A stretch of DNA of 64,000 bases from the NCBI RefSeq assembly GCF_036365525.1, contig NC_090387.1:88515691-88579690 (forward strand). The letters are read 5' to 3'. The stretch comes from Heterodontus francisci. Its lineage: Eukaryota. The translations under genes and the position numbers were made by a program. This document shows, piece by piece, positions 1 to 50,648 of the stretch. The notes under the pieces were generated by a model, which saw only the letters and a program-made list of their open reading frames with translations, was not told the DNA's origin and ran no database searches. Every line of letters starts with the position of its first letter. Position 1 is the stretch's first letter.

Positions 1-50
1 TATTCATTATTTACTTTAAAGAAAATAATCGCTTCAGTTCGCTGCTCAAG

Positions 51-102
51 ATGCTGAGAGCCTTGCTTCCTTACATGGTGTTTCTGGCAATCAGTTGTCC
101 AG
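51..102 (+). CDS. Exon 1: signal peptide [17 protein letters not shown]
   Basis: ATG at 51, hydrophobic leader, donor CCAG|gtaaat in phase 1, as typical for IgSF leader exons. Confidence 0.85.
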
Positions 103-3100
103 GTAAATTTATTTTGTATCAACGCTCTCTCATTTCTTAAATTGACGAATATCATTTAATGTTCTCTTTTAGCTCTTCATGTTACTTTCCGCTTATTTTT
201 CATTATTTCTTTTCTACTTCTGAACTTTCTGCCTGTTTGTCAACTGGACAATTTAAATTGATGTTTCTTTGTTTAATGCTGCGTTTAATACTTTTTCGAC
301 AGCCGCTGGCAATTCTTCATCAACCGTGACACAGACTCCCGAATCCAAAGTGATGAGAGGAGGCTCCGTGACTCTTTACTGCATATTTCCCATCTTTTCA
401 GACAAGAGACCAGTGAAAGTGCATTGGTGGAGAGACGGGCAGGGTGGGTTCCTGGAGGAAAGTGTAGACAGGAGAATCCGGTTTTATTTCTTAAACCAAG
501 GGGGAGCTGCCTTTAAACTTACAGCCGCGAGAGCCGAGGACGCGGGGCTCTATTACTGCAGAGTGTCACACAAAGAGGTTGCAAATGGTACCGGCACAAG
601 ACTGGCTGTATATGGTGAGTGTCAATGTCGACGAGAATCGAATTTCGGTCACATATTGTGTAGAGTTTTAAAGCTATCACCTGCTCTGTCGCCTTAGAAA
701 TACGAGCTTTATTTATTCATTCGGTCCACGCGAGGGTTGTTGACAAGCACAAATTTTAATGCCCATCGCTCGTTACCGTTAACAAGTGGTGTTGAGCCGC
801 CTTCTTGAAAGCTTGCAGTCGGGTAGTGAAGATAATGTCGTAGTTCTGTTAAGTAGGCACTTCCTCGATTTTGCGCAAACATGGTAAATTACCGACGATA
901 GAAGCACAAGTCAGGGCGATATGTGACTTGGAGTATATATGGAGGGCGGATTTCCAGGCACCTGCTACTCTTGTCCTTCCAGGTGCTTGAGGTCCCGGGT
1001 TTGGAAGGTGCAGTCGATTCACCCTTGGAGTGCTGCTGCAGTGAACTTTGAAAACAGAAAGCACCCCAGCCACAGTGCGCCATTGATGGACAAAGTTCAT
1101 AATTAAGCTGGTTGATGGGGTTTAGATGAAGCAAAGTACTTTTACGAGCTGGATGTTCTTCTCCTGAGTGTTGTTGGAGCCGCAATCATCCAGCCAAGTT
1201 GAGAGAATTCTATAACACTCCTAATCTGTGCCCTATAGGTGCTTGAAACTATTTGGATCGTCAGCAGGTGAGTCAATCGCTGAAGCATACCCATTTTTGA
1301 GGAACTCTTTATCACTGTATGAATGTAGAGTGTCCAAGTTAAGTTTCTGTTCCTAAAGTTGACCGTCTGGATGTTGATTGAAATGGCATTGAATGTCAAA
1401 CGCAGGTGGATAGACTCTTGTTAGAGATGATAAATGGCTGGCATTTATGTTGCACGAATGTTGCTTGCCATTTTTCAGCACTTGTCTAGATTGTGGCCGG
1501 ATCGCGTTCCATGTGGACATGCCTTGATTCATTATATGAGGAAATGTGAATGGCACTGAATAAAAGCGAACTGTTGAACTTTCGATGAGGGGAGATTCAT
1601 TGATGAAGCAGCTGAAGATGGTTGTGCCTAAACCACTGCACTGTGGAATTCTTACAGCGACGTACTGGGGCTGAGATGATTGACCTGCAGCAAGCACAGC
1701 CTTCCTTCTTTATGCTAAGTACAACTCCAACCAAGGAGGGAGGTAGTTAGGGAGAGAGTAAGCCCCCTTAAGGATCAGTGTGGTAATCTATGTGTGGAGC
1801 CACGGGAAATGGGCGAGGTCTTAAATGAATACTTCTCGTCCGTATTTACCGTGGAGAAGCTCGTGAGTTCAAGGGAGGGAATAGCGATATCCTGGAGCAT
1901 ATCAACATTACAAAGGAGGAGGTGTTGGAGGTTTTGAAACACATTAAAGTGGATAAATCTCCAGGGCCTGACCAGGTGTATCCTAGGATGGTATGGGAAG
2001 AAAGGGAGGAGATTGCTGGGGCCCTGGCAGAGATTTATGTATCATCATTAGCCACAGGTGAGGTACCGGAAGAGTGGAGGATAGCTAATGTTGTGCCTTT
2101 ATTTAAGAAGGGCAGCAGGGATAAGTCAGGGAACTACAGGCCGGGAGCCTTACGTCAGTGGTGGGAAAGCTATTCTGAGAGACAGGATTTATATGCATTT
2201 GGAAAGGCAAGGTCTCATTAGGGATAGTCAGAATGGCTTTGTGCATGGGAAATCATGTCTCACGCATTTGATTGAGTTTTTCGATATGGTAACCAAGAGG
2301 ACTGACGAGGGCAGGGCGATGGATGTTGTCTACATGGACTGTAGCAAGGCCTTTGACAAGGTCCTACATGGTAGGCTGGTCTGGAAGGTTCGAACACATG
2401 GGATCCCGGGTGAGCTAGCCAATTGAATACAAAGTTGGCTTGGTGATAGGAGGCAGAGTGTGGTAGTGGAGGGTTGTTTTTCAGATTGGAGGCCGGTGAC
2501 CAGTGGTGTGCCAAAGTGATCATTGCTGGGCCTTCTGTTGTTTGTCATATATATTAATGAGTTGGATGTGAATGGAGGGGGCATGATTGGTATGTTTGCA
2601 GATGACACCATAATTGGTGGCACAGTGGACAGTGAAGAAGGTTGTCTAAGGTTACAACAGGATAATAGATAAACTGGGGAAGTGGGCAAGGGATTGGCAA
2701 ATGGAATTTAACGCAGACAAGTGCGAAGTGATGCATTTAGGGAAGTTAAACCAGGACATATACAGTGAATGGCAGGGCCCTGGGGAGTGTTATTCAACAG
2801 ATAGACTTTGGGGTGAAAGTACATAGTTCCCTAAAAGTGGCAACACAGGTAGACAGGGTGGTGAAGAAGGCATATGTCATGCTTACCTTCATTGTCTGAG
2901 GCATTGTGCATAACAAGAGTTGCGACGTCATGTTATTACAGTTCGACATAACGTTGGTTAGGCCGCACTTGGATTCTGGTCGCCGCACTACAGGACAGAC
3001 GTGATTAAGCTAGAGAGACTGCAGAAAAGATTCACAAGGATATTGCTTTGTTTGGAGGGCTTGAATTATAAAGTCAGATTGGATAGGCTGGGTCTGTTTT

Positions 3101-6100
3101 CCCTGGAGTGAAGGAGGCTGAGAGGGGACATGATAGAGGGATATGAAATTATGAGAGGCATAGATAGGGTAGATAGTCAGAGTCTGCTTCCCATGGTCGG
3201 GGTGACTGAAACTAGAGGACATAGATTTAAGATGAGAGGGAGGAGGTTTAAAGGGGATCAAAGGGGTAAATTTTTCACACAAAGTACAGTGGGTATCTGG
3301 AATGAGCTGCCAGAGGAGGTGGTGGAGGCAGGAACAGTAGCAACATTTAAGTGGCATTTGGACAGGTACTTGAATGAGAAAGGCATAGAGGGATATGGAA
3401 TTAATGCAGGCAGGTGGGATTAGTATAGATAGGCATTATGGTCGGCATGGACACGGTGGGCTGCAGGACGTTATGACTCTATGACTCTGAGAGCTTCTTG
3501 CCGATCTCGGTTGATTTCAGTTGAACAAGCATTTTAAAGTGCAATCTTCATTGCTCTCTACTTTCGAAATGTATCTGATTTTCCATTGCTTCTGCATAAG
3601 CTTTCCACCTTTATTTGAGTAGTTTGTTCAACAATATATAAGAATATACGTTTAAAATGTTGTTTTAACTGTTATGCAGACATAAACGGTGCAGAATTAA
3701 ATAACTAAACAACTATATATTTATCAAAATCTGAGAATTATTACAACACTCACTGTCGGCATTCAACTTTCGGTGCATACGTTGTAATTTGTAATGGATT
3801 AGGAAGCGAACTGAAAGAACGTATTAATACAGTAATATGTTTAAACCTTGATACTCCAGATAAACTGGACCTCTGGATTTGCTTCCTTTGCTCTGTGCCG
3901 GCTCTCTGCTAACCTAGTCGCACTCCCCGCCTTTCCCCAGTAGCCCTGTATTGTTTTTCTTCTTCTCAGATAATTATCCAATTCACTTTCAAAGGCTTCC
4001 ATTGCACACACTCTGATTAAGGATGCCAGTCTCGCCTTTACCCTTATTATGAAATCTTGTCATACGACCTTTAATGCCCATAGCGTCGGGGAGAGCGAAC
4101 TCAGTTTAAAGTTCCATTAGAAAACAAAGGCAAACGTTGCCATGCAGCCCTCCATCGCATACTACAACATCACCAGAAAATGTAAGCCCTGTTTTAGTTT
4201 GGAGCTTGTATCCAAATCTGGCGGAAGCAAGGAAAAAGCACTGAACTACGATGCAATTATACTAACTCACACTTTGCACTGGACTTTTATCGAATTTACA
4301 TTAAATTTTTACATTAAATTGGTGAGAGATTGAGCTATTTTACAAAATTTTGAATTGCAATTTCACATTACTGGTTCGAAGTTGCGGTCTCAGGGCGATC
4401 TTTCTAAGGATGAGGCCATATGGATCTTAATCCCTAAAATAAAACAAAAGTTATTGAAGGGCAAGGTATCTGTCTGTTGCTGTAGATGGTAGAACAGTTA
4501 GGTATTTGAATGTTTTAAGCATTTGGGGAAGTATGGACAAAATGATAAGAAGCTGTAAAAACGTAATTCATTTATTTCGCAGATAAACCGAAGGGATGTG
4601 ACGGATGGAAAGCGTAATAAACATTTTCATTGTTCCGTCTCTGAAATGCTGATAGATTTACATAAATTCAAATTATTGTCTTTAAAGTTCCCCGCGCCGC
4701 ACCCCCCCCCCCCCCGCACCCCCCCCCACCCCCCCCCCCCCCAAAAAAAAGAAAGTACCATACGCCGTTGTTTAATGTTTCCTCTTTGCCTTTCGCATGA
4801 ATCCGGTACCGGAAGATAATTGCCCAATACCTGTCATGTAACACGGTAAAGCGTATTTCAAATTTGAAGGGTCATTGCGGTTTAATTATGTCTTCTCTCG
4901 GGTTTCCAGCGATAGAATTTGCTTCAAATTCCCAAAAGCAGCTCCAGGATTAAAAAGAATTTCTTGCTGTACTTTTGTAGAATCTCCGAGCCCTCTACAG
5001 ATGGTCTTCAGTCGGTCTGAGAACGGATCAGCTGTTCCTCTGACGCTCAGCTGTAAAACAGCGGCGTATTTCCCGGATGATCTGAACATCACTTGGTACA
5101 AAAATGGGTCGGAAATTAGCACAGGGATGGAACAAAGGAAATGGCAGAATGCAGCAGGACTGTATGAGGCTTCCAGCAAACTGACTGAGATAGAGCCTGT
5201 AGAGAATGGGACTGTTTACACCTGTCAGGTCTCCCACATCTCTCTTCGGATACCAGCCAACGTCAGCTACACTTTCTATATCTTGGGTAAGATCAAGCAA
5301 TGAGATTAGTTACTTTGTAATTTGATGTGTGAAGAAAATAATTGTAATGCTCAGGTGCGCGTGCTGCATGACCCACAGTAGAACTGCGTTGTAACAAGTC
5401 TTACTAAGAAATTTGACTGAACCAGCCGTTGAAATACTGTAATTCCAAGAGCTGGCCAGAGGCTGTAAATACTGTGATGAGTAACACATTTCGTAACTCT
5501 CCAAAATCCTGCATACCTCTACAAACTACGAGTCAGGAGTGTGTTTGACTATCTCTGAAGCATCTATATCAATGATTTGGATGTGGGGATCAAATATAAT
5601 ATTTGCTGATGACACAAAACTAAGTGGGAATATGAGTTGTGAGGATGATTCAAAAAGGCTTTAAGGGGATTTAGACAGGCTAAGTGAATGGAACAGGAAC
5701 ACGACAGCTGGAATATAATGTGGAAAACGTGTAATTATCCACTTTGGTAGGAAAACAGAAATGCAGAGTATTTCTTAAATGCCGAAAAATTGGGAAGTGT
5801 TCAAAGGGTGTCCTTGTTTATAAGTCACTGCAAGCTAACATGTAGGTGCAGCAAGTAATTAGGAAGGAAAATGGGATCTTGGCCTTAATTGCAAGAGGAC
5901 CTCCACACAGGAACAAAATAACAGAATTGCTGCAATTGTATAGAGCCTTGTGCAATCATCAGCGAACATCCCCACTTCTGACCTTATGATGGAGGGTAGG
6001 TCATTGATGAAGCAGATGAAGATGGTTTGGCCTCGGACACTACCCTGAGGAACTCCTGCAGTGATGTCCTGCGATTGAGATGATTGAACTTTAACAGCCA

Positions 6101-9100
6101 CAACCATCTTCCTTTGCGCTAGGTACGATTCCAACCAGTGGAGAGTTTTCCACCTGATTCTCATTGATTCTAGTTTTGCTAGGGCTCCTTGATGCCATAC
6201 TCGGGCAAATGCTGCCTTGATGTCAAGTGCAGTCACTCCCACCGTGTGAGAAATCCTCTGCCATTACGTAATTCTGCATTTAACCCACAGATAGTTCGAA
6301 ATCCTGTTAATATTTTTCAGTTAACTTTGTAGCTAGAAATAGGCGTTACCACCTCTAAGTTTCGGAAATAAAATCCATTCTAACTAATATCTGGAAATGA
6401 AATACAACTATTTGCATTCGTATCGGTGAAGTTATTGGATTGCCATAAAAACTCAGTTCGTCCATTAACATCCTTCAGTGAAGGAAACTCGCTTTCCTTT
6501 GTCATGCTGGTCTTTAGGCGATTCTAGTACTGCATCAGTCACTCGAAGTCATAATTTGTCTTTGAAAGTGGTCGAGCAAGCCACTGAGTTGGATCAAATT
6601 AGGGATGACAGTCAATAGCGGAATTTCCAACCATGCTCATAAATGCAAATTGAATTAAATAAATGTGGGCACAGAAAGTTATTTCTCAGTCGTTACCGAG
6701 TCGCTCCAGATGACTTTTATTTGGACAGCTGACACTTCGACACTAACCGAGATTTTGTCCAATGCCCAGCTGACAGAGACAGTGAAATGTGACTTATCAT
6801 TACCCTACTCCTGTCTTGAAATTATTTCGTGGATTCTCAACAGATCAGCATCATGTTTCTGTTTACAAGATTGAATTCCACTTCAATACTTTAATTTCAG
6901 TTTTCTTTAAAGTGCGTGATGCAACAGACCACCGTACAAAATAAATAAAAATGACGGAAAAAGATTCGAAAATCTACGTTAACTGTGAATTTCTATACAG
7001 CTGCTGCAAGATCTGCTGAGCATTTCCTCATTTTCTGCTGTTATTTCAGATCTCTACCATTCGCATTGTTGGTCTCAATCAAACTCAAATTGCTCGGGAA
7101 TAAAACAGAAAGTGCTGAAAACACTCAGTTCTGATGAAAGGTCACAGACCTGAAACGTTGACTCAGCTTCTCTCTCCACAGATGCTGCCTGATCTGCAGA
7201 GTTTTTCCAGAACTTTCTGTTTTTATTTCAGATTTCCAGTATTTAGTTTTTTTTATCATACTGCTCGTGTTTGCAATACACGGAGTGAGATTGGGAGTCT
7301 CAGCGTGAATGATTATAGGAAATATTTCCCTGTGCTTTCTTTGTATCCAGCACAGGGCCGTCAGAGGAAACATTGCACTGAGTTTACTTTGTAACTAACA
7401 AAGAAGGTCATAGGATATATACACCACTACCGACTATCTATCTAACACAAAGCCGCCTTAGGAAACTTACCCTTTATGCTGATTATGTCCCTCGCACAGG
7501 ACCGTCGGAGGAAATATATGCCTGTATTAACTTTGCATCTATTGAAGAACCCTATTAGGAAACCTTCTCCTCTGCTTACTTTGCGTCTAAAACAAAAGAG
7601 TCATAGAAAATATTGCCCCGACATTAAAGATAAGCAGAAGTGAAGAGGTTGGAATAAATTGATACATTATTATCTGAATACGCTGTACATATTTTACAAA
7701 TTACGTCTATATTCACAATTAATCTAGCAGGTTATGGTGACACCAACGATTATCCACTGATTTGCGGTTGTCTGGCAGCAGGACTGATAATTTTCCTGAT
7801 CTTAATCTTCATTGTGAAGATAAGAGGTAAGACACAATGTCTATTAATTCGGTAGATTATTGTAATATTCCTCAGTTGGATTTAAGTGCTGGTAAATGTC
7901 AACCCGAGCAACGTATACTGTGCGCACATAGTTGCTTCGATTTAATGGTTCCATATCAGTTTCCGATGGTTTCACCTGGTAGGTTAATTCAGCCGAATGC
8001 TGTATATCGGGGTGTGTCGTAGAGGGGATAGTTCATTTGTGATGTCCCCGGTGATTACTTTGCCTCCCAGAACCCACTTCTTTGGAAGTCATGCATGCAC
8101 TCTCGCGGGCCGTTAACTTACACCAACATGAGTCATGTTTTCTATTCAACGCAGCTAACAGCCTGAAAATAAAGCCTGTTAATACTGTCGAGATTTAAAC
8201 CGAAACATATCCTGAGATTATTTTCTTTGCACACATGCTTTGAATCGCAACATAGGACGACAGGATGTTCCAGACATTCTTTGGCAAGAAATGATGAAGA
8301 ATTGCAATTGAACTTGTTCATAGACTAAGTTGGTTATGAGGACCTACCGGCCTCCTGGTATCAGTTATAACATTTTAGTGGGAGGTGCAATACCTGCTCA
8401 TTTACCTCCTCTCTCCTCACTATCCAAGGCCCCAAATACTCCTTTCAAGTGAGACAGCGATTTACTTGTACTTCTTCCAATTTAGTATACTGTATTCGCT
8501 GCTCACAATGTGGTCTCTTCTACATTGGGAGAGCCCAGAATACTGAGGGAGGCAAGGGAAGAAATTGCTGGGGTCTTGACAGAAATCTTTGCACCCTCAT
8601 TGGCTACAGGTGAGGTCCCAGAGGACTGGAGAATAGGCAATGTTGTTCCTTTGTTTAAGAAGTGTAGCAAAGATAATCCAGGAAATTATAGGCCGGTGAG
8701 CATTACGTCAGTGGTAGCGAAATTATCAAAGAGGACAGGATTTACTCCTATTTGGAAACAAACGAACTCATTAGCGAGAGGTGGCATGGTTTTGTAAAGG
8801 GGAAGTCGTGTCTCACTAATTTGATTGAGTTTTTTGAGGAAGTGACAAAGATGACTGATGAAGGACGGGCAGTGGATGTTATCTATATGGACTTCAGTAA
8901 AGCCTTTGACAAGGTCCTTCATGGCAGACTGGTACAAAAGGTGAAGTCCCACGGGATCAGAGCTGGCAAGATGGATACAGAAGTGGCTCAGTCATAGGGG
9001 ACAGAGGGTAGCAGTGGAAGGGTGCTTTTCTGAATGGAGGGATGTGACTAGTGGTTTTCTGCAGGGATCAATGCTGGGACCTTTGCTGTTTGTCATATAT

Positions 9101-12100
9101 ATAAATGATTTGGAGGAATATGTAGCTGGTCTGATTAGCAAGTTTGCGGACGACACAAAGGTTTGTGCAGTTCCGGATGGTGATGAGGATTGTCAGAGGA
9201 TACAGCAGGATAGAGATCAGTTGGAGACTTGGGCAGAGAAATGGCAGATGGACTTTGCGGATAAATGTGAGCTAATGCATTTTGGAAGGTCTAATGCAGG
9301 TGGGAAGTATATAGTAAATGGCAGAACCCTTAGGAGTATTGACCGGCAGAGGGATCTGGGCGTACAGGTCCACAGGTCACTGAAAGCGGCAACGCAGGTG
9401 GATAATGCAGTCAAGAAGGCATACGGCATGCTTGCCTTCATCGGTCGGGGCATGGAGTATAAAATGTGGCAAGTCATGCTGCAGCTGTACAGAACCTTAG
9501 TTAGGCCACACTGAGAATATTGCGTGCAATTCTGGTCACCACACTACCAGAAGGACGTGGAGGCTTTGGAGAGGGTACAGAAAAGGTTTACCAGGATGTT
9601 GCCTGGTCTGGAGGGCATTAGCTATGAAGAGAGGTTGGATAAACTCTGATTGTTTTCACTGGAGCGGTGGAGGTGGAGGGGCGACATGATAGAGGTTTAC
9701 AAAGTTATGAGCGGCATGGACAGAGTGGATAGTCAGAAGCTTTTACCCAGGGTGGAAGAGTCAGTTACTAGGGGGCATAGGTTTAAGGTGAGAGTGGCAA
9801 AGTTTAGAGGCGATGTGCGAGGCAATTTCTTTACACCGAGTGTGGTGAGTGCCTGGAAATTGCTGCTCGAAGCAGGTACGATAGTGACGTTTAAGAGGCA
9901 TCTTGACAATACATGAATAGGATGGGAATAGAGGGATACGGTCCCCGGAAATGCAGAAGGTTTTAGTTTAGGCAGGCATTAAGATCGGCGCAGGCTTGGA
10001 GGGCCGAATGGCCTGTTCCTGTGCTGTATTGTTCTTTGTTCTTTTGTTTTTTTTTTGTTCAAATGCAGACTGGGTGACCGCTTTGCGGAACAACTGCATT
10101 CAGTCCAAAAGCATAACCCCGAGCTTCCGATTGCAACAACAACCCCCCCCCCCACCCCCCGCCCCACCCGCTCTCATGCCCATATCTCTGCTCTGGGATT
10201 GCCGCAGTGTTCCAGTAAACATCAACACAAGCTCGAGAAACAGCATCTCATTAACCAAATAGGCACGCTACAGCCTGCCATACTGAACATTTAATTAAAT
10301 AATTTCAGAGCATGATGGGCTCCCCTTTTGATTTTGATTTTTAGTTTTATTTTCTTTTTTCTTCTTCATTTTTATTTTTTATGTGTTTATTTTATTTCAG
10401 TTTGTTTAGTTTGATTCTACTGTGCCTACCCATTGTTTTTTCCATGTTTGTGCTTTGGGCCAGGGCTGTTCATTTTCCTGACAATTAACACCCTCTCTGC
10501 ACTAAAGCTTTGTCTTTCACCATACCATTAACATACCGTTTGACTTTGCTCCATGACCTTCCGGTCAGTTATTCTTTGTGACCTTGTCCTATCAACACCT
10601 TCTCTTTTGTTATTTCTTGCCCCACCCCAACTTTATTTGCTTAAAACCTGTTACATTTCTAATGTCTGCCAGTTTTGAAGGGTCACTGACCTGAAACGTA
10701 AGCTCTTCTTCTCTCCACAGATTCTGCCAGACCTGTTGAGTATTTCCAGCATTTCTTGTTTTATTCAAGATTTCCAGCATCTGCAGTATTCTGCTTTTAT
10801 TGTAACATTTTAGTAGATTGATTGATAAGGAATTAAAATATCTTTCCCTAATTTACTTCTCCTTTAGGGACACGTAGAAAGCTGCCAAAACATGATCAAC
10901 GCATTGCGCAGGTAAATTCATCGCACTAACAATATCAGAAGTAACGATATATTTTTTTAAGTACTTCCAGCTTTTACCAGATATTCCCTTGCTTTCTGCT
11001 TACACTGTATAATTAAAAGGGCATGATGCAATTAGATATCATGAAACGCCACAATAATGAAATCAAAATAATCGATGAGCTACTTAAATTATCTCAATAG
11101 AAGGATTAGTTTAATCAGTTTCGAGTCCTGCTTCATTCTTTTCCAAAAATCATTACCTCAGTCCCTCGACTACCTGCATTTTGAGAGTCATGCGAACTTG
11201 AATGTCTGCAATACCTTCAATTGAATAAAATACCTTCAGGTTGTTTCAGTCGACAAAAGACAGACTGCTGCTTGTGGGACAATTATAGGATTTGAACAAC
11301 GTAGCGAAGTTAATTCTTGAGGGGTGATTTCCACAATTTTGAAACAACAACCATAAAATAATTTGCTTTGGTATATATAAATATCTATAAAACGAGTGGC
11401 AACAATCAAAAGCAATGGCACAAAACCGGAATACATCCATTTGAATGAGCTTACAAATAAACTAGCCTAAAACAATTTGGCCAGTGGCACATAAGCCATA
11501 CACTGCATAGTTAGACAACAAACTAAAGGATAACAAAGAGGAATACGGAAAAGATTTGCAAGTAAGTAAAATCAACCAACAATTTAAAAGATAAAGTGAA
11601 ACTACAAAATTAAATTATTAAGGAACGGACAAATAAATAGTATTCTATCGATGCATAAATGAGAAAATGAAAATCAAGTTAAGGATAGGCCTGCATAAAA
11701 TTACATCGGAGTAAGTCACAGATAATGACCTTGGAATGGAAGAAATAATAGATAACTTGCCTCGATATTTACCAGGTAGCCAATCATGGTGGCATGGCAT
11801 TAGAAGTCAAGAGGTCTGTTTTTCAAACAAAGCCACTTCAGCTAGAAAGAGCCAAGGAAATTGATATACTCCTCAGACCTATACAACATATGCACCTAAT
11901 CCAGATGGATTGCATCCGTGTATTTTGAGATAGCAGAGGCACAATTACACATATAAGTGAAAATAATTAGCAAAGGGAATAGTGCCATAATACTGGCATA
12001 TGATCACTTAAAAATGTGTTAAGGGAACTTTAGACCAATTAGCTTAACGTTAATGGGGCCAACAATAATGGGAATCTCACTCAAAGGTATAACAGAAAAA

Positions 12101-15100
12101 AAGTAGAAGCTAATAAAACAATAGAGTAGCCAGCAAGGACCTCATCATAGATAATCCTGCTTGACCAATCCTATCGATTACTTTGAGCAAGTAACATAAA
12201 GAGTACATAAGGGTATTGTAGTAAATGAAATATATTTAGATTTTCAAAAGACCTTCGCTAAGGAATTGCATAGTTGAGTCATGAGTAATGTCAGAACATG
12301 TGGAGTGACGGCCCAAGTAGCAGAATGGATAGAAAACCCGCTACAAAACAGAAAACAAAAACTCGGGGCTAAAGGTAGCAATTGCGTCTGGTAAAAGCTG
12401 AGAAGTGGCTTTCCACAAGGATTGCTGCATGGACTATTATTGTTCATTATTTACAAAAAAGCATTAGGACTCGAAAATTGGGAGTGCAATTTCAAGTTTT
12501 CCGATGACACAAAATAAGGATGTAGTTAATAGAGTGAAGGGTTGTGACAAAATATATTTCTTAGGAAGTTAGGAGTTAGGAAGTAAGTTGAAAAGTAGGA
12601 CCTCAAAGGTAGCGATCTCAGGATTACTACCACTGCCACGTGCTGGTCAGAGTAGCAATAGCAGGATATATCGGATTAATACGTGGCTGAAGAGATGGTG
12701 TGAAGTGGGGTGGGGGTTTAGATTCCTGGGACATTGGGACCAGTTCTGGGGGAGGTGGGACCAGTACAAACTGGATGGGTTACACCTGGGCAGGACTGGG
12801 ACTGATGTCTTAGGGGGAGTACGTGCTAGCGTGGTTGGAGAGGGTTTAGCTAAAATGGCAGGGGGATGGGAACCTTTGCAAGGAGTCAGAGGAGGGGGGA
12901 TCAAAGACAAGAACAAAAGACAGTAAGGGTGATAAGAAAAGTGATAGGCAGAGAAATCAAGGGCCAGAATCAAACAGGGCCACAGTGAGAAATAGTGGGA
13001 AGGCGACAAGTAATGTTAAGAAGACAAGCCTTAATGCTTTGTGCCTTAACACGAAGAGCATTCGCAATAAAGTGGATGAATTAATCATGCAAATAGATGT
13101 AAACGGGGATGATATAGTTGGGATTACGGAGACATGGCTGCAGGGTGACCAGGGATGGGAAATGAACATCCAGGGGTATTCAGTATTTGGGAAGGACAGA
13201 CAAAAAGTAAAAGGCGGTGCAGCTGCATTGCTGGTTAAAAACAGGACATTAACGTAACAGTGAGGAAGGATATTAGCTCTGACGATCTGGAATCTGTATG
13301 GGTAGAGCTGAGAAACACTAAGGGGCAAAAACGATAGTGGCTGTTGTATATAGACCCACAAACTGTAGTGGTGATGTTGGGAATGGCATTAAACAGGAAA
13401 TTAGAGACACATGCGATAAAGGAACATCTGTCATTATGGGTGACATTAATCTGCACATAGATTAGGCAAATCAAATTAGTCACAATACTGTGTAAGAGGA
13501 ATTCATGGAGTGTTTAGGATGGTTTTCTGGGCCAATACGTTGAGGAACCAATTCGAGAACAGGCCATCCTAGAGTTTGCATTATGTAACGAGAGAGGAAT
13601 AATTGACAATCCAGTTGGGTGAGACCCCTTGGGGCTGAATGACCATAATATGATAGAATTCATCATCAAGATTGAGAGTGACATAGTTGATTCTAAGACT
13701 AGGGTCCTGAATCTTACTAAAGGAAACTATGAAGGTATAAGGCGCGAGATGGCTATGATGGACTGGGAAATATTATTTAAAGGGATGACGGTGGATAGGC
13801 AATGGCAAACATTCAAAGAGCACATGGATGAACTGCAACAATTGTTTATTCCTGTCTGGCACAAAAGTAAAACCGGAACAGTAGCCAAACCATGGCTTCC
13901 AAGGGAAATTAGAAATAGCATTAGATCGAAACAAGAGGCATACAAATTTGCCAGAAAAAAAACAACAGACCTGAGGATTGGCAGCAGTTTAGAATTCAGC
14001 AAAGGAGGACCAAAGGATTGATTAAGAAGGGGAAAATAGAGTACAAGAATAAGCTAGCAGGGAACATAAAAACTGACTGTAAAAGCTTCCATAGGTTGGT
14101 GAAGAGAAAAAGATTGGTGAAGACAGATGTAGGTCCCTTACAGTCAGAAACAGGGAAATTTATCATGGGGAACAAAGAAATGGCTGACCAACGAAATGCA
14201 TACTTTGGTTCCATCTTCACAAAGGAGGACACAAATATCATACCAGAAATGTTGGGGAACACAGGGTTTAGTGAGAGGGAGGAACTGAAGGAAATCAGTA
14301 TTAGTAGAGAAATGGTGTTGGGTAAATTGATGGGATTGAAGGCTGATAAATCCCCAGGGTCTGATAATCTACATCCCAGAGTACTTATGGAAGTGGCCGT
14401 AGAAATAGTGGATGCATTGATGGTCATCTTCCAAAATTCTATCGACTCTGGAAGAGTTCCTACAGATTGGAGCGTAGCTAATGTAACCTCACTATTTAAA
14501 AAGGGAGTTAGAGAGAAAACAGGGAATTATAGACCAGTTAGCCTGAGGTCGTTAGTGGGGAAAATTCTAGAGTCCATTCTCAAAGATTTTATAGCCGAGC
14601 TTTTGGAGAACAGTGGTAGAATCAGACAGAGTCAGCATGGATTTACGGAAGGGAAATTATGCTTGATAAATCTATTAGAATTATTCGAGGATGTAGCTAG
14701 TGGGGTTGATGAGGGACAGCCAGTGGATGTGTTTATTTGGACTTTCAGAAGGCTTTCGAAAAAGTCCCACATAAGAGATTAGCATGTAAAATTAAAGCGC
14801 ATGGGATTGAGGGTAGTGTATTGTGATGGGTAGAAAATTGGTTGGCAGATAGGAAACAAATTAATAAATGGGTCTTTTTTTCTGAATGGCAGGCAGTGAC
14901 TAGTGGGGTACTACAGGGATCGGTGCCAGGACCCCAGCTAGTCACAATATTTCTGAATGATTTAGATGAGGGAACTAAATGTAATATCTCCAAATTTGCA
15001 GATGACACAACACTTGGGATTTGAGTTGTCAGGAGGATACAGAGAAGCTTCAGGGTGATTTGGACAGGTTGAGTGAGTGGGCAAATGCATGGCAGATGCA

Positions 15101-18100
15101 GTATAATGTGGATAAATGTGAGGTTATCCACTTTGGTAGCAACAACAGGAAGGAAGATTATTATCTGAACGGCTATAAACTGAGAGAGAGGATTACGCAA
15201 CGATACCTGAGTGTTCTCGTACACCAGTTGCTGAAGGTAAGCATGCAGGTGCAACAGGTGGTAAAAAAGGCAAATGGTATGTTGGCCGTCATAGCGAGAG
15301 GATTCAAGTCCAGGAGCAGGTGCTTGTCTTGCTGCAATTATGCAGGGCCTTGGTGAGGCCACACCTGGAATATTGTGTGCAGCTTTGGTCTCCTTATCTG
15401 AGGAAGGATGTTCTTTCTATGGAGGGAGTGCAGCAAAGGTTTCCCAGGCTGATTCCAGGGATGGCGGGACTGAGGTATGAGGAGAGATTGAGTCGGTTAG
15501 GATTATATTGCCTGGAGTTCAGAAGTGTGAGGGGGGATCTCATAGAAACCTATAAAATTCTAACAGGACTTGACAGGGTGGATGCAGGAAGGATGTTCCC
15601 GATGGTGGGGGATTCCAGAATCAGGAGTTATAGTCTAAGGGTACGGGGTAAACCTTTCATGACTGAGAGGAGGAGAAATTCCTTAACCCAAAAAGTGGTG
15701 AACCTGTGGAATTCGCTATCACAGAATGCAGTTGAGGACAGTTGAGCAGTTTTGAAGAAGGAGTTAGATGTAGCTCTTGGGGCGGAAAGGATCAAAGGAT
15801 ATGAAAGGAAAGCGGAACAGGTTACTGAGTTGGATGATCATAATGAGTGGCGGAGCAGGCTCGAAGGGCCGAATGGCCTACTCCTGCTCCTATTTTCTAT
15901 CTTTTTATGTTAATACACTTCACGAATGCGTGTGCAAATGGCAAATTAACTTGGATATTGTTAATTGTGAAATGTCCCGCTTTAACAGGAAGGGCACAAG
16001 CACCTTGGAAATGAAATGTATAATCACTTACAGGAGCACAGATATATGGGGTTAAAGCTACGTAAATCACGAAAAGTAATGATGGTGGTTAATAAGACCA
16101 GAAATAAAGTGATAAAGGTCGAGAGGGATAGAATTGAAAAGCAGAAAAGTTATGTTGAAATTGTTTGTACATCCGTTGACCGCATTTGAATGTTGCAAAC
16201 AGCTCTGGTCTCCATATTGTAAAGAAGGTATAGAGGCACTCGTGATCTTACAAATAATAGTAGAAAATGGTGCACGAACTGAAAGGATTTGCTGCTGAGG
16301 AGTGCTTGAACAGGGTGGGGCACTTATCTGTAGAAAGTAGAAGACTGTGGTGCGACCTCATACAGGTATTTTAGATTGTAAAAGGGTTTGAAAAGGTAAA
16401 CGTAGAGAAGATGTTTCCACGTTCAGCGGAGACCAGAACTAGGGACCTTGTATATGGGATAGTTACTGAGAAATTCAATAAGGATTTCTGGAGAAAAGTC
16501 TTTACCGAAAGAGTGGTCAGAATGTGGAACGTGCTACCAGGATGACTAACTGAGGCAAATGATATAAGAATAAATGCATGAAGCAGAAAAAAGAATAAAG
16601 GGATATGTTGATAGTGTTAGATGAAGAAGGATGCAAGGAGGTTGATATAAAATGTTTAAGACCTGGTGGACTGAATGACATATTTCGGTTCTGTAAATGC
16701 AATATAACAATTTGAATAAACGTACAAGAATAATTTGAAAGTATTAGAATTGATAAACATTGGGAAACATTCAACTGTGAGATGATAGGCGTATAGAGTA
16801 ACTACATTCCCAGACGAATTAAGAAGCAAACACGGGACTTTTCTGAAATAATAACGAAATAAAATTAAACGTAAAGTAAGACTAACAAAGTGGATTACAA
16901 CAAATTCAGCGCAGATAATACGGAAGCAAATCAAATGGAATAAAGACAATGCAGTGGAAGCAAATAACAATAAAGAAAAATTAAGGTTCATGCAGGGATT
17001 GAACAAACGTTTGTAGATGACAATAATGACAATACTACTGCGTATACTAAACACTTAATGGGGACTTTTAAAAACTTTTGGCCAAAGTGAAAATCAGACA
17101 ATAATGATTGTTCACCCATTATATGGCTGGCCCGATTTCCCTTTCTTTGTATTTAATGGGAGCGAAAACGAAGAGTAAAGTATAATTGGGCGCCGAAATG
17201 ATACCTACAGTTTTAGAGATTTGAACCTGCTTAAAGTGCACCAGTATTTATCTCTCTATTCGCTGATCTCCTGTTCCAAATTGCACAAAAGGTAGAGGGA
17301 AAACTTGGAGATGTAGGTAGAATACTGTTTTGTCACTCTTCCCAGCGCATCATACAGCCGATGCGTTACTCTCGCTTTACTCTGGATGACGAAATTTTGC
17401 ACACTACAATCATGTACAGTATTTATTTCAGTCTGGTATGACATCTTTATGGCAAATAAGTCGACTTCTAGAGAAAATGTTCTATGAGAAAAATGTGTTT
17501 TTTATCTACAGGTCATGCATACAGAAGCTGATGAGCGGCTAAAATACGTCACTCTGAATCTCACTGACACCCAGAAAATTAATAAACCCAGAAGTACAGA
17601 AGGAAGTACAATAGAGACCCAGGTAGAGGGAACATTAGTCAATTGATGGAGCTGTGATTCCAATTCCAGAATAACTGCACAGTCTTTTGACGTCATTATC
17701 GCAACACGGTATACGTGTGTGTGTGTGTGTGTGTGTGTGCGTGAGAGATTACGTGCATATTAAGTGTACAGCCCAAACCAATTTTTATCAGTACTGTTGA
17801 ATTTGATCCATGATGGAATAGATTACATTTTTCACAGAGCAAATGATCTAACCAAGTGCATGGTTTCAATTATTTCAACAATCCATACATTATGGCAAAA
17901 AGGAAATTAATTAGTTAAATTAAATTATTGACTTAACAGTGAAAAATGGTGGGAGCACTGAAACATGTAATGATTTATTCATCGTATAATGACGTGAGAG
18001 ATTTTGAAACATAACTCATCGCTTGAACAATAAGTAGTTACCTTAACAGGAAAACTTTGGACTTAAGAGGATTTTAAAATTATTTGTACCGCTGATTTGA

Positions 18101-18267
18101 ATGGTCCTAAATATTGGCATTTACAGATGATGCAAGAGGTTACCGGGAATAACATTGTGTACGCAACTGCGGATTTTACAGGATCGAAAAGGACGGGGAG
18201 AACTCCACGGAAGGAAGTGAATGCAGTTTATGCACAGGTACAGCAGAGATTAGGTACAGAAAGATGA
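51..18267 (+). CDS. Non-rearranging VJ-C1 immunoglobulin-superfamily type I membrane receptor with ITIM/ITSM-like tail; join(51..102,303..614,4981..5286,7731..7826,10868..10911,17512..17622,18127..18267), 353 aa predicted
   Basis: All six introns are GT..AG with compatible phases (1,1,1,1,0,0). The summed exon length of 1062 nt is open from ATG 51 to TGA 18265-18267. Domain order is signal peptide, V-set, C1-set, TM, cytoplasmic tyrosine motifs. No transcript data, so cytoplasmic exons are inferred. Confidence 0.85.
303..614 (+). CDS. Exon 2: Ig V-set domain with germline-joined J-like G strand
   Basis: Acceptor ttttcgacag, donor G|gtgagt. Motifs: [21 protein letters not shown] and J-like NGTGTRLAV (G-x-G-T-x-L-x-V pattern, first Gly replaced by Asn). 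Confidence 0.93.
708..1735 (-). mobile_element. Decayed non-LTR retrotransposon (CR1/L2-group), RT C-terminus and 3' tail
   Basis: Minus ORF remnants GQSSQPQ...[10 protein letters not shown] resemble an RT domain. Tail ends in gaatgaataaaaataaa. Confidence 0.7.
1736..3488 (+). mobile_element. 5'-truncated CR1 (HER1-like) LINE
   Basis: ORF2 remnants DKSPGPD, NYRP, KAFDKV, MFADDT. 3' end atggtcggcatggac...(atgactct)n. Confidence 0.92.
4689..4742. repeat. Interrupted poly-C tract (G-quadruplex-prone on the - strand)
   Basis: Several runs of 4-15 C seen directly. Confidence 0.85.
4981..5286 (+). CDS. Exon 3: Ig C1-set domain
   Basis: Acceptor cttttgtag, donor G|gtaaga. Motifs: [33 protein letters not shown] (Ig/MHC C1 signature Y-x-C-x-V-x-H). 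Five N-x-S/T sequons. Confidence 0.93.
5500..6243. mobile_element. Composite of LINE RT fragments: CR1 (+, ~5560-5950) abutting a second LINE family (-, ~5950-6243)
   Basis: FADDTK-like remnant on +. Minus [11 protein letters not shown]...GVPQGSV...MFADDC. Confidence 0.75.
6430..6663 (+). mobile_element. Degenerate 3' half of a tRNA-derived SINE (same family as 19101..19490)
   Basis: Loose colinear similarity to 19270-19490 (gaaggaaa..., gagcaagccact, attagggatg). Confidence 0.5.
6975..7245 (+). mobile_element. Penelope-like element terminal (pLTR) fragments with a short inverted segment
   Basis: Matches the terminus of the GIY-YIG-bearing element at 10670-10800. 7102-7128 is an inverted copy of ~7197-7224. 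Confidence 0.7.
7127..7163 (+). ncRNA. Minimal type I hammerhead ribozyme (Penelope-associated)
   Basis: AGTT-CTGATGA-A-AGGTC/ACA/GACCT-GAAA-CG-T-T-GACT: conserved boxes, 5-bp stem II, palindromic ACGT stem III, 4-bp stem I. Confidence 0.7.
7317..7620 (+). repeat. Degenerate ~48-bp tandem repeat, about 6.3 units
   Basis: Units start with AGGAAA-like words at 7317, 7365, 7412, 7460, 7509, 7557, 7605. Confidence 0.8.
7731..7826 (+). CDS. Exon 4: connecting peptide and transmembrane helix [32 protein letters not shown]
   Basis: Acceptor ctagcag (NAGNAG), donor AG|gtaaga, phase 1-1. About 20 hydrophobic residues with no charged residue, followed by basic residues. Confidence 0.88.
8380..10800 (+). 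mobile_element. Penelope-like element 3' part (GIY-YIG endonuclease and terminus), split by a CR1 insertion
   Basis: Left arm [23 protein letters not shown]. Right arm (from 10060) [15 protein letters not shown]...KLEKQHLI. Terminus with decayed hammerhead at ~10670-10703. Confidence 0.85.
8534..10059 (+). mobile_element. 5'-truncated CR1 (HER1-like) LINE, relatively young
   Basis: RT ORF pieces including [10 protein letters not shown] and KFADDTK. Tail ggccgaatggcctgttcctgtgctgta(ttgttc)n. Confidence 0.93.
10868..10911 (+). CDS. Exon 5: short juxtamembrane cytoplasmic exon [15 protein letters not shown]
   Basis: Strong pyrimidine tract plus tag acceptor, donor CAG|gtaaat. Phase 1-0 bridges exon 4 to the phase-0 exon 6. 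Confidence 0.75.
11560..16705 (+). mobile_element. Old CR1 LINE (11560-12560 and 15912-16705) interrupted by a younger CR1
   Basis: Highly decayed ORF2 resumes after the insert at the matching RT position (after FSDDTK, resuming at CKWQINL). Confidence 0.75.
12563..15910 (+). mobile_element. Long CR1 LINE: ORF1 C-terminus (SGNH esterase-like), APE endonuclease and RT, frameshifted
   Basis: KLDGLHL in ORF1; GITETWL and NDHNMI in APE; KFADDT in RT; 3' tail cctactcctgctcctatt. Confidence 0.92.
17512..17622 (+). CDS. Exon 6: cytoplasmic exon with canonical ITIM LKYVTL
   Basis: Acceptor tttttatctacag. Encodes [37 protein letters not shown]. Donor CAG|gtagag is weak; read-through stops at 17646. 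Confidence 0.78.
17715..17739. repeat. (GT)n microsatellite in intron 6
   Basis: About 12 GT units seen directly. Confidence 0.95.
18127..18267 (+). CDS. Exon 7: terminal cytoplasmic exon with IVYATA and AVYAQV tyrosine motifs
   Basis: Acceptor catttacag. Encodes [46 protein letters not shown]. Colinear with exon 6. Confidence 0.78.
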   Translation: MMQEVTGNNIVYATADFTGSKRTGRTPRKEVNAVYAQVQQRLGTER

Positions 18268-18912
18268 AAACAAAGTTACCTCTACCTGCATGTGAACTGA
18301 CATTTGATTATAGTAATATCGATTTTTTTTTTAACAAGTTGAAGACCATGGAATGAAAATGGAAGTTGCGGCCTGAATACGCCATTGCGTGCCTGTGAGA
18401 CAGCAGAGATGGAGCGAACATTTTTTTTTCCGATTGATTAGAGGGATGAGTGCAGCGCAGACTCCCAACGGGTCATTATTAGGACCAAAAATCTTTTTTT
18501 TTCAATTTATTGATTCTCTGGAGTTGAATATTCGGAGTAAAATTTGAAAATTTGCAGTTGAAACCAATCTTTGAAGGCGCTAAAGCATACTGATAAAAGG
18601 AGAAAAAACGTGATCCTTGACTTTATAAAGTGAAGCAAAAATGACAAAAGAAAGGTAGTTATGCTAAACATTTATGCATCAATATTTGGGCCATAGCTAG
18701 AGTATTGGGTGGGATGTCTCCCTCTGCTGCAAAGGAAGGACGTCAGTATTTATTGCTCTTGCTCTTGCCCATAGACTTTCTATGGGATTTTGCACTGGTA
18801 CGTAAAGTAAATCAGAGAACCAAAATGTGCAGATACATCTACAATGCATCAGGAATCTATACGAACAGGGCAAGCAGCACTGTAACTCTCTAACTAATCA
18901 GGTTGAAGAATT

Positions 18913-20385: not shown

Positions 20386-21055
20386 TACAAGAATATTCAT
20401 TATCTTAGTATCCTTATTAAAGGAAATCTTAACCGTTTTAATGCACTCATTACTGGAAATGTAAACCGTTTAGACAACGAGATGGTGGTTAGCTAAGCAA
20501 AACTGGGGTGATCGTAACATGGAACATTGTTTACAGACCAAACATGGGATTTCTATGTACACCGAACTAAATGTGATTGACTTTAGCAAAACTGCAAAAT
20601 CATGAGGAACGGCAAATTTAATGAATACGAATAACATTAGAAATACTTTTATGAACATTGTAAAGAAACAATTGCAGAGAACTAATCATCTCATTCGTTG
20701 TCGGAATAGCCTTTGTGTCGATGTTATGATGTATTATTCATGTATTCTGTACGGCCGGAAGATTATCTTCATCCAACATTTTTCAGTGTAATTATGGATT
20801 CAATATATATACAAATAAATATAATACTAAAAACAAATGCTGTCGCCCACAATCATGTTAGACGTAGCAACAGTTCTTTGCTGAGCGACGTTTTCATGAC
20901 GACTCTAACATTCACAGCAGAATTTGAAGTTAAAACGTTCACTCAACTCGAATTTAACCCACGAATCTCTTTTCGGAATTATTTCAGTAAGCTATCTGGA
21001 ATAAATTGCGCATCTGCTGGTGGGCTGCGAACTGTTTGTATTCACATAGACTTTT

Positions 21056-22932
21056 CAAGAACAAGAACAAAAAACAGTACAGCACAGGAACAAGCCATTC
21101 GGCACTCCAAGCCTACGCCGATCTTGATGCCTGCCTAAACTAACACCTTCTGCACTCCCGGGGCCGATATCCCTCTATTCCCTTCCTATTCACATATTTG
21201 TCAAGATGTCTATTAAACATCGCTATCGTATCTGCTTCCACCATCTCCGCTGGCAGCAAGTTCCAGGCACTCACCACCCTCTAGGTAACAAACTTGCCTC
21301 GCACATCCCCTCTAAACTTTGCCCCTTGCACCTTAAACCTATGTCCCCTCGTAACTGACTCTTCCACCCTGGGAAAAAGCTTCTAACTATCCGCTATGTC
21401 CATGGCGCTCATAACTTTGTAAATCTCTATCGTGTCGCCCCTCCACCTCCGTCGTTCCAGTGAAAGCTATCCGGGTTTTTCCAACCTCTCCTCATAGCTA
21501 ATGCCCTCCAGACCAGGGAACATCCTGGTAAACATCCTCTGTACCCTGTCCAAAGCCTCCACGTCCTTCTGGTAGTGTGGCGACCAGAATTGCACGCAAT
21601 ATTCTAAGTGTGGCCTAACTAAGGTTCTGTACAGCTGCAACATGACTTGCCAATTTTTTTACTCTATGCCCCGACTGATGAAGGCAACCATGATGTATGC
21701 CTTCTTGATTAACTTATCCACCTGTGTTGCTACTTTCAGTGACCTGTGGACCTGTACGTCCAGATCTCTCTGCCTGTCAATACTCCTAAGGGTTCTGCCA
21801 TTTACTGTATACCTCCCACCTGCATTAGACCTGGCAAAATGCATTACCTCACATTTGTCCGGATTAAACTCCATCTGCCATTTCTCCGCCCAAGTCTCCA
21901 ACCTATATCCTATATCCTGCTGTATCCTCTGACAATCCTCATCATTATCCGTAACTCCACCAACCTTTGTGTCGTCCACAAACTTACAAATCAGACCAGC
22001 TACATTTTCCTCCAAATCATTTATATATACTACAAACAGCAAAGGTCCCAGCACTGATCCCTGCAGAACACCACTAGTCACATCCCTCCATTCAGAAAAG
22101 AACACTTCCACTGTTACCCTCTGTCTTCTGTGACTGAGCCAGTTCTATATCCATCTTGCCAGCTCACCTCTGATCACGTGTGACTTCACCTTTTGCACCA
22201 GTCTGCCATGCAGGACCTTGTCAAAGGCTTTACTAAAGTCCATATAGACAACATCCACCGCCCTTCCCTCATCAATCATCTTCGTCACTTCCTCAAAAAA
22301 CTCAATCAAATTAGTGAGACACGACTTCCCCTTTACAAAACCATGCTACCTCTCGCTAAAAAGTTCGTTTGTTTCCAAATAGGAGTAAATCCTGTCCCGA
22401 AGAATTCTCTCTAATAATTTTGCTACCACTGACGTAAGGCTCACCGGCCTATAATTTCCTGGATCATCTTTGCTACACTTCTTAAACAAAGGAACAACAT
22501 TGACTATTCTCCAGTCCTCTGGGACCTCACCTGTAGCCATTGATGATGCAAAGATTTCTGTCAAGGCCCCAGCAATTTCTTCCTTTGCCTCCCTCAGTAT
22601 TCTAGGGTAGATCCCATCAGGCCCTGGGGACTTATCTACCTTAATGCTTTGCAAGACACCCAACACCTCCTCCTTTTTGATAATGAGATGATTGAAACTA
22701 TCTGCACTCCCTTCCCGAGGCTCATCATCCACCAATTCCTTCTCCTTGGTGAATACGGATGCAAAGTATTCATTTAGCACCTCCCCCATTTCCTCCTGAT
22801 CCACGCATTGATTCCCGTCTCCATCCTTGAGTGGGCCAACCCTTTCCCTGGTTACCCTCTTGCTCTTTATATATGTATAAAGAGCCTTGGGATTTTCCTT
22901 AATCCTGTTTGCCAATGACATTTCATGACCCG
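21056..22932 (-). mobile_element. 5'-truncated CR1 LINE, same subfamily as 8534..10059
   Basis: Minus ORFs 22346..22921 and 21659..22111 (RT). 3' UTR nearly identical to the reverse complement of 9920-10050. Confidence 0.93.
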
Positions 22933-49595: not shown

Positions 49596-50532
49596 CAATG
49601 CAGAAAGTGTGATTTGTCATGGCCTCAACATCCAAGATGGGAACAAATGTCTTTGGAGGGAAATGCTCAGTCGCCAAGTAAATTGATCATTGATTGGCTT
49701 CTAATCCTGTCCTGTTGGATAATATCGTAATAAGATCGCACTTTAATGCTGAATCAAATACGGGATTATGGATAGAACACCCGACTAAACCTTGAGTAAT
49801 CATAATAATTTTATAAAAAAAAACATTGCAAGTTCTCAATTCAAACCAAAATCAAAACAGGAAAGCCACGAACCAGTCAGCAACTTTGGAGAGAGCAGAC
49901 AGATTAGCACTTGGGGCTCGGTTTATCTTCTGAACATAAGCATGAAGCATGAATATTTTCAAGTGACATGGTATATGGAATGGCTGAACAAAGAAGAAAA
50001 CTATTTCTGGAATGATAATCCGATGAAGTAACAATTAATGTCAGGCAATACAATGAAACATTCATAAATTAAAGACAAGGCAGTAATCGAAATCCCATGC
50101 AGAAAAAAACACAAAGTAAAAAGAGGAGTCAGGGAAATAGAAATATAGATATTTTCCCTTGTTTGACAGTACAAGTTAAATCACGAGAAAGTATATGACG
50201 GAATCTGACTGTCGACAGATATGCTGGAGAATATTACAATACCATGTCAAACTTGATGCAGAGTGCAAAGGGAATGAGAACAGTGTTGACAGTTCCAAAG
50301 AGGCCGATTGTGATGTTCAATGGCACACGTTCCAAGAGTTTGAAGCTGGAATGGAACGTGCCCACGACAAATTGGTTGAAGAAAAGAACTCGTTTCACGA
50401 CTTTGGAAAGGAACGGAAGGCTGAAAAAGGCAGCAGCAGGCTTAAATTCATAAACGACGTAAATGATTCCGTGATGTGCATATGGATCAAATCTTTTAAG
50501 CGCATTCATGTCTTCTTAATTTAGCTGCTGGT

Positions 50533-50648
50533 TTATACCATTGTGTAGACTAGACTTGTGTCTTTGTGTTTAGACTTCGACGTTTGCTTAGAACCAGTCA
50601 AATTCAGAGCAAGGTAGTCAGTTTGCTGCCAGTGGTGTTCTGTCTGGT
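50533..50648 (-). CDS. Terminal cytoplasmic exon of a paralogous IgSF receptor (TDYLAL, LVYTMV motifs)
   Basis: Minus-strand acceptor atgttttacag. Encodes (D)QTEHHWQQTDYLALNLTGSKQTSKSKHKDTSLVYTMV*. Same 23-residue Tyr-Tyr spacing as exon 7, and shares Y-x-x-LNLT with exon 6 and TGSK with exon 7. Confidence 0.72.

Follow-up and report, generated by a model that had tools for sequence, protein, structure and literature searches.

Genes in which an unsplit VJ exon (variable, V, and joining, J, parts in one piece) is followed by a C1-set immunoglobulin (Ig) domain have been sought as relatives of the gene that the RAG transposon entered, and discussion has so far centred on UrIg and UrIg2, NKp30, SIRP and PRARP (PMC10751288, PMC12227049). 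In UrIg2 the domain order is V-C1-C2-C3 and the chains are joined into dimers by disulfide bonds; its gene is linked to the complex of Ig and T-cell receptor (TCR) genes; UrIg is linked to the major histocompatibility complex (MHC) (PMC12227049, PMC10751288). Here we describe a gene with a VJ exon and a C1 exon from the horn shark, Heterodontus francisci. It occupies positions 51-18356 on the plus strand of a 64,000-nucleotide (nt) stretch of contig NC_090387.1 (assembly GCF_036365525.1, positions 88,515,691 to 88,579,690), which we refer to as the window.

This is an intact, transcribed gene for a non-rearranging VJ-C1 protein that carries an immunoreceptor tyrosine-based inhibitory motif (ITIM). 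In our judgement it probably encodes a type I membrane receptor from a family of paired receptors, its own signalling being presumably inhibitory. The predicted product would be a type I membrane glycoprotein consisting of a signal peptide, a germline-joined V domain, one C1 domain, a short stalk, an uncharged transmembrane (TM) helix and a disordered tail.

Gene structure

The gene has multiple exons, bordered by AG acceptors and GT donors in compatible phases (Table 1). An interpretation made from the letters of the window alone (the sequence-only reading) had placed seven of them, and all seven were recovered: translated exon by exon, they were 100% identical to the Heterodontus francisci RefSeq proteins XP_067906068/69/70, named 'immunoglobulin lambda-1 light chain-like'. 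This identity also bears out the attribution of the gene to a cartilaginous fish. The gene was not hidden, since RefSeq already includes it with three isoforms. Nor does it stand alone: it is one of many such genes across all chondrichthyan lineages. For searches with the spliced product we used the database protein P0152 (XP_067906069.1, 'immunoglobulin lambda-1 light chain-like isoform X2'), which was returned by a search with the Heptranchias ortholog; otherwise single-exon references were used.

Exon 4 was the one convincing TM exon in a hydrophobicity scan, and the modelled helix spans residues 231-256. Exon 5 was the best candidate in a scan of AG...GT intervals at the required phase, with comparison to the ortholog; 17 of the 20 nucleotides upstream of it are pyrimidines and its donor is GTAAAT. 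Equal length and phase clearly mark exons 6 and 7 as the result of a tandem duplication. The intron between them carries a (GT)n run near 17715-17740.

The 3′ end had to be revised. The exons as first placed, including 18127-18267, total 1062 nt (353 codons and a stop), and a product of 353 amino acids ending at 18267 had been predicted. RefSeq removes an intron of 101 nt from this last exon (donor 18237/18238, acceptor 18338/18339) and places the stop codon at 18354-18356, which gives P0152 and P0167 the C-terminus ...AVYAQLKTME and a length of 349 or 350 residues. The three RefSeq isoforms share exons 1-6. Isoform X2 has 349 residues, whereas isoform X1 (350 residues) uses a NAGNAG acceptor 3 bases upstream, at 7728, which adds one Ala to the TM exon. 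Isoform X3 (320 residues) enters exon 7 at an internal acceptor (18181/18182) and stops at 18218-18220; its short, frame-shifted tail lacks the last two tyrosine motifs.

Table 1. Exons of the horn shark V-C1 gene and other features of the window
Feature	Position	Strand	Remarks
Exon 1, leader	51-102	+	ATG start; hydrophobic signal peptide; phase 1 out at GT donor; 100% identical to residues 1-17 of P0152/P0167
Exon 2, V-set and J-like G strand	303-614	+	312 nt; phase 1 in and out; 100% identical to P0152 residues 18-121
Cassette exon in intron 2, alternative	983-1267	+	285 nt; run X1 contig joins 613/614-982/983 and 1265/1267-4979/4981; GT..AG ends
Exon 3, C1-set	4981-5286	+	Phase 1 in and out; 100% identical to P0152 residues 122-224
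Exon 4, stalk and uncharged TM helix, then K-I-R	7731-7826	+	Hydrophobicity scan; 100% identical to P0152 and P0167
Exon 5, juxtamembrane cytoplasmic	10868-10911	+	44 nt; phase 1 in, 0 out; 100% identical to P0152 residues 256-271
Exon 6, signalling unit with ITIM	17512-17622	+	111 nt; phase 0; 100% identical to P0168, 97% window match to P0152
Exon 7 (RefSeq), second signalling unit, IVYATA ... AVYAQ	18127-18237	+	111 nt; phase 0; compared with P0152, P0167 and P0168
Terminal exon, coding part (L-K-T-M-E-stop)	18339-18356	+	ttg aag acc atg gaa tga after acceptor 18337-18338; isoforms X1 and X2
Candidate unused or relic terminal exon (...SMYTEL...SKTAKS-stop)	20527-20605	+	Acceptor tgtttacag; open frame to stop; a lead only
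LINE (long interspersed nuclear element) reverse-transcriptase fragments	1900-3400, 8500-9900, 12600-15750	+	Filling the introns; several run the same way as the gene
LINE reverse-transcriptase fragments	21660-22110, 47950-48700, 61310-61800	-	
Integrase zinc-binding fragment	30139-30642	+	Downstream of the gene
Cytoplasmic-tail exons of a paralog	50524-50883	-	Convergent with the gene; similar to XP_067905931.1; in-frame stops in alignment

Transcripts

RNA reads from four public runs were mapped to positions 1-6000 of the window. In run X2, Logan contig record 8 (1087 nt) joined 363-613 directly to 4980-5286 and extended 529 nt further 3′, so that the splice from the V exon to the C1 exon, expected from the sequence, was found in RNA. 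Compared with the window, this contig had 3 differences over 251 nt of V exon and was identical over 307 nt of C1 exon; the concentration of the differences in V could reflect allelic variation, in a sample far too small to say. In run X1, contig record 1 (902 nt) was free of differences. It left the V exon at 613/614, included the segment 983-1267, and entered and left the C1 exon at 4981 and 5286, respectively. Being spliced, both contigs derive from RNA, and they bear out three splice sites: the donor of the V exon and both the acceptor and the donor of the C1 exon. Reads seemed to be cut at a low-complexity G/C-rich tract around 4690-4760.

The additional segment in the run X1 contig is an alternative cassette exon. 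Its in-frame translation, G-A-stop, ends two codons beyond the V exon, and the segment is either a poison exon or the source of a V-only product. None of the three retrieved RefSeq protein isoforms (X1-X3) reflects it. Because read depth across 801-1200 amounted to hundreds to thousands in all four runs, a repeated element probably takes in at least part of the cassette exon (983-1200).

The intact frame, the expression and the conserved orthologs led us to reject a pseudogene interpretation.

The V and C1 domains

The V exon matched the Pfam V-set profile (7.5e-9, above the gathering score) and Ig_3 (2.5e-10), and has the landmarks C...W...D-x-G-x-Y-x-C. It ends, directly before the donor, with a J-like G strand, N-G-T-G-T-R-L-A-V, of the form G-x-G-T-x-L-x-V. 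The residue preceding the first G of this strand is Asn, whereas it is aromatic in Ig and TCR J segments. No heptamer resembling that of a recombination signal sequence (RSS; CAC core, at most one mismatch) was detected in 280-720. The V domain is thus of the germline-joined VJ type known from NKp30, SIRP, NITR, CD8 and PRARP, with the J-like strand inside the V exon as the sequence-only reading had described. Membership in the rearranging Ig/TCR genes was considered and rejected, the V part and the J-like strand being continuous in one exon and an RSS heptamer not being found.

That the second Ig domain is a true C1-set domain was likewise upheld. The exon scored 52.4 bits with Pfam C1-set (PF07654; cut-off 21, E 7e-14) and shows the Y-x-C-x-V-x-H signature as YTCQVSH. 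Its best sequence matches in the PDB (phmmer) were Ig CH and CL domains and the C domains of shark UrIg2 (9dmx, E 4e-15). The PDB sequence lists were dominated by antibodies, and E-values for NKp30, SIRP and B7-H6 could not be read from them. No second C1 domain was found between the V and TM exons, nor by tblastn in the window, and the RefSeq protein also has one.

Structural comparisons

An AlphaFold2 (AF2) model was built with the family alignment. The predicted local distance difference test (pLDDT) exceeded 90 over both Ig domains and the TM helix was confident; the inter-domain geometry of the model is uncertain. When the whole ectodomain was compared with Foldseek, Ig light chains came first (E ~1e-15) but at a root mean square deviation (rmsd) of ~9 Å, and the domain arrangement therefore differs. 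In an exhaustive alignment to 48,161 representative PDB chains the first match was B7-H6 (4zso_E; Z 17.1, 3.4 Å, 191 residues, 25% identity), followed by B7-H3, PD-L2, butyrophilins and ICOS-L (Z 14.8-16.1), nectins and Neph-type proteins. The V-C pairs of B7 proteins and butyrophilins superpose at 2.6-3.4 Å, which indicates a B7 fold and domain arrangement by a small margin over the nectins and Neph-type proteins. The description of the ectodomain as TCR- or Ig-light-chain-shaped, given by the sequence-only reading, consequently did not hold. UrIg2 (9dmx) superposed poorly on the model (rmsd 10.3 Å). No SIRP chain was among the top 50 structural matches, either of the whole ectodomain or of V alone, or among the top 60 PDB sequence matches.

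The V domain by itself gave a different picture. A V-only model (pLDDT 91.7) had NKp30 (6yjp_A) as its top Foldseek match in the whole PDB (E 1.2e-8, 29% identity), with another NKp30 entry, 3noi, at ranks 4 and 6. In the VIA list for V alone, NKp30 had the highest identity (30%) and V-lambda domains were essentially tied with it. As judged from these models, the V domain appears NKp30-like or VJ-type and the two-domain shape B7-H6-like, the margins being small.

The resemblance to B7-H6 raises the question whether the product is a ligand of that type, displayed on target or stressed cells and seen by the multi-copy NKp30 (NCR3) of sharks, with a tail serving only reverse signalling or trafficking. 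Besides the structural ranking, the nearest named clusters in a protein-language-model Atlas were of B7/butyrophilin, HHLA2 and PD-L1 types, NCBI labels several paralogs 'NCR3 ligand 1-like', and NCR3 is multi-copy in the shark MHC: on white shark chromosome 19 the supplement of PMC10751288 records five NCR3 genes, lying between AIF1 and DDAH2, and on chromosome 34 of the sawfish it records three named 'NCR3-like', next to ddah2. However, the Z gap of B7-H6 over unrelated V-C pairs is below 1.5 in a model of uncertain inter-domain geometry, and V alone is nearest to NKp30 itself and has the same G-x-G-T-x-L-x-V strand. The family moreover splits into ITIM-tailed members and short-tailed members with a TM arginine, which is the signature of paired leukocyte receptors. 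We therefore regard a B7-H6-type ligand as unlikely, and a receptor as the better account of the gene.

The transmembrane segment and the cytoplasmic tail

The TM segment contains no charged residue. It is followed by a cytoplasmic tail of ~95 residues, disordered in the AF2 model, in which LKYVTL (exon 6) conforms to the ITIM consensus [S/I/V/L]-x-Y-x-x-[I/V/L]. The two tyrosine motifs of exon 7, IVYATA with Ala at +3 and AVYAQL with Ala at -2, both fall outside this consensus. The second tyrosine of exon 6 has been lost: the horn shark sequence is STIETQ, whereas the Heptranchias ortholog has STIYSET.

Downstream of the gene, the segment 20527-20605 is similar to the exon with which the Heptranchias ortholog ends, as seen from a weak tblastn hit (E 0.79) on residues 347-367 of P0003. 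It would add a canonical ITIM (S-M-Y-T-E-L), and is used by none of the three RefSeq isoforms.

The V-C1 family in cartilaginous fish

When 1.84 billion representative proteins were searched with the V exon, 408 matches reached E ≤0.001. Apart from giant multi-Ig proteins, the best matches were proteins of ~220-410 residues with a V domain ending in a G-x-G-T/S strand, a C1 domain, a TM segment and a tail, and roughly 70 distinct members of this V-C1 family were present among the matches. All named matches came from sharks, rays or chimaeras; ~25 V-C1 matches lay outside the named set. A word search with the C1 region of P0152 yielded nothing new among the 13 candidates scored. The horn shark has at least seven further family loci on the same chromosome of 99.65 Mb.

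In a maximum-likelihood tree of 46 ectodomains, the gene fell in a clade with a support of 99 in the SH-aLRT (Shimodaira-Hasegawa-like approximate likelihood ratio test). The clade contains sequences from Heterodontus, Heptranchias, Chiloscyllium, Mobula, Leucoraja and Callorhinchus, in an order that follows the species tree. Judged from this tree, the gene is no recent copy but belongs to a long-conserved lineage, kept since before the chimaeras diverged from sharks and rays. Identity to the Heptranchias ortholog amounts to 76% in V and 69% in C1, and the conservation of the V domain hints at a conserved ligand.

Two classes of members were distinguished. The long-tail class has repeated units of the form h-x-Y-A-x-L ... 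x-x-Y-A-x-V/L, which we take to be reminiscent of the SIRP-alpha tail. In the short-tail class the TM segment has an arginine close to its outer end (P0031, P0158, P0109, P0022, P0162, P0116, P0063). Because ITIM-tailed and short-tailed Arg-TM members coexist, the family looks like a set of paired inhibitory and activating receptors. In some paralogs or isoforms the C1 exon is skipped, which results in an NKp30-like V-TM layout (P0074, P0070, P0052).

The RefSeq names within the family are inconsistent: they include SIRP-alpha-like, SIRP-beta-1-like, NCR3 ligand 1-like, tapasin-related-like and Ig lambda-like, as well as NCR3-like for a V-only isoform. They are therefore similarity labels, not orthology calls. 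This matters for the possibility that the gene is the cartilaginous-fish ortholog of SIRP-alpha (PTPNS1), as might be suggested by the label 'tyrosine-protein phosphatase non-receptor type substrate 1-like' or 'SIRP beta-1-like' that this protein's Heptranchias ortholog and many of its paralogs bear. The layout of a VJ-type V domain, a C1-set domain and a tail with tyrosine motifs is indeed held in common, and activating-type relatives occur in the family. However, the protein has one C1 domain, not two, and SIRP chains did not appear among the structural and sequence matches described above. In a profile search all matches stronger than E 1e-27 were chondrichthyan, and the next were turtle MHC class II chains (1e-12), aligned through the C1 domain; no strong match was found outside Chondrichthyes among the word-sharing candidates that this search sees, so that absence elsewhere is unproven. 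Orthology to SIRP-alpha is very unlikely, and we prefer to see the gene as a member of a separate paired-receptor family.

A literature search (VJ-C1, PRARP, shark SIRP, paired receptors) found no description of the V-C1 family, although an earlier one may exist. The gene is an annotated yet uncharacterised member of a large chondrichthyan family, and its RefSeq name is misleading.

Location relative to the MHC

The excerpted gene tables of PMC10751288, which among sharks and rays give gene names for the sawfish only, do not contain the names of the V-C1 family. We compared the chromosomes carrying V-C1 members with the MHC chromosome in three species. In the sawfish the V-C1 member is on a chromosome of 54 Mb, and the last listed gene of the MHC chromosome is near 20 Mb. 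The corresponding values are 199 Mb and near 163 Mb in the catshark, and 194 Mb and near 116 Mb in the white shark. Because the chromosome lengths differ from that of the MHC chromosome of each species, the members found in these three species appear to lie off the MHC chromosome. No sign of the linkage to the MHC that the sequence-only reading had suggested looking for was thus seen in them.

The location also bears on a relationship to the pre-RAG antigen receptor, in which the VJ-C1 chain would pair into Ig/TCR-like dimers and recognise antigen in the manner of UrIg and UrIg2. The uninterrupted VJ exon with a true C1 domain, the match of the C1 exon to the UrIg2 C domains and the tie of V-lambda with NKp30 as the nearest V structures are what such a relative might show. 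Against this, the protein combines one C domain with an ITIM tail and lacks a C2-C3 Fc-like part, the rmsd values of UrIg2 and of light chains are large, and no linkage to the MHC or to an antigen-receptor complex was found. We consider this relationship highly improbable, and retain the interpretation as an ITIM-bearing receptor.

Other features of the window

From 19 to 64 kb the window holds only transposon debris (reverse transcriptase, integrase) and the decayed tail of a paralog. No V, C1 or TM exon of this paralog was found in the window. Decay of the copy would account for this, as would a different placement of its exons.

Proposed function

In the mechanism that we propose, the V domain would bind a cell-surface or soluble ligand, Src-family kinases would phosphorylate the ITIM tyrosine, and SH2-domain phosphatases of the SHP-1/SHP-2 type would dock there and damp the activation of the leukocyte bearing the receptor. 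The Arg-TM relatives would signal oppositely, through an adaptor with an immunoreceptor tyrosine-based activation motif (ITAM).

Several observations weigh against this proposal. The most deeply covered RNA contig is the form with the putative poison exon, and the transcript output may be partly non-productive. The reads covered the first 6 kb, and the leader-to-V junction and the four 3′ junctions rest on the RefSeq models and the Heptranchias ortholog. The best two-domain structural match, B7-H6, is a ligand and not a receptor. As to the SHP-recruiting inhibitory tail put forward by the sequence-only reading, the canonical ITIM and the uncharged TM segment speak for it, but only one of the three tail tyrosines fits the ITIM consensus, and tandem-SH2 phosphatases usually need two phosphotyrosines. 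Recruitment of an SHP-type phosphatase, resting on one motif, is plausible; the canonical ITIM in the tail is the part of that claim that stood.

A broader conjecture is that the chondrichthyan V-C1 family, within which the present gene forms an old single-copy lineage, is a surviving form of the ancestral VJ-C1 gene that gave rise both to NKp30, a receptor with V only, and to B7-H6, a ligand with V and C1. We think this rather improbable. If true, receptor and ligand would be of one origin, and there would be a second non-rearranging antigen-receptor-like set outside the MHC and the Ig/TCR complex.

As a result on a single locus the present one is modest, the gene being already in RefSeq and its function being read from motifs alone. 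Its wider meaning is that, in addition to the systems discussed so far, cartilaginous fish possess VJ-C1 membrane receptors as a large family that seems not to be MHC-linked and has inhibitory and activating-type members. The gene resembles NKp30 in its V domain and B7-H6 in the shape of its two domains, which makes it useful as an outgroup when the NKp30/B7-H6 pair and the SIRP family are to be dated.

Comparison with known systems

With Ig lambda light chains, after which RefSeq named it, the protein has in common the layout of V and C1 and an identity of 21-25%. Unlike a light chain, it is membrane-anchored and has a signalling tail, and its gene has no V-J rearrangement and no RSS; the name is a similarity label. 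UrIg and UrIg2 resemble it in having, likewise in elasmobranchs, a non-rearranging VJ exon followed by a C1 domain, but in the horn shark gene the single C domain is followed by a TM exon and an ITIM tail, and there is no Fc-like C2-C3 part.

SIRP proteins share with it a VJ-type V domain followed by a C1-set domain, an inhibitory tail with tyrosine motifs, short-tailed relatives with a charged TM segment, and the RefSeq similarity names. They differ in having two C1 domains after V, whereas the horn shark protein has one. The likeness to B7-H6 and to B7 and butyrophilin proteins in general lies in the ectodomain of V and C1-like domains in an extended arrangement, with one Ig domain per phase-1 exon. 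B7 proteins, however, are ligands and do not form ITIM/Arg-TM pairs, and the V domain described here is nearer in identity to NKp30 than to any B7 V domain.

NKp30 (NCR3) itself lacks a C domain; its tail is short and its TM segment contains an Arg. It is similar in its V domain, with a J-like G-x-G-T-x-L-x-V strand and an N-glycosylation site, encoded by a single V exon without rearrangement. The horn shark protein departs from the NKp30 layout in its C1 domain, its uncharged TM segment and its ITIM-bearing tail. The two also appear to differ in location: the shark NCR3 genes are in the MHC class III region by AIF1 and DDAH2, whereas the V-C1 members found in the three species compared appear to be on other chromosomes.

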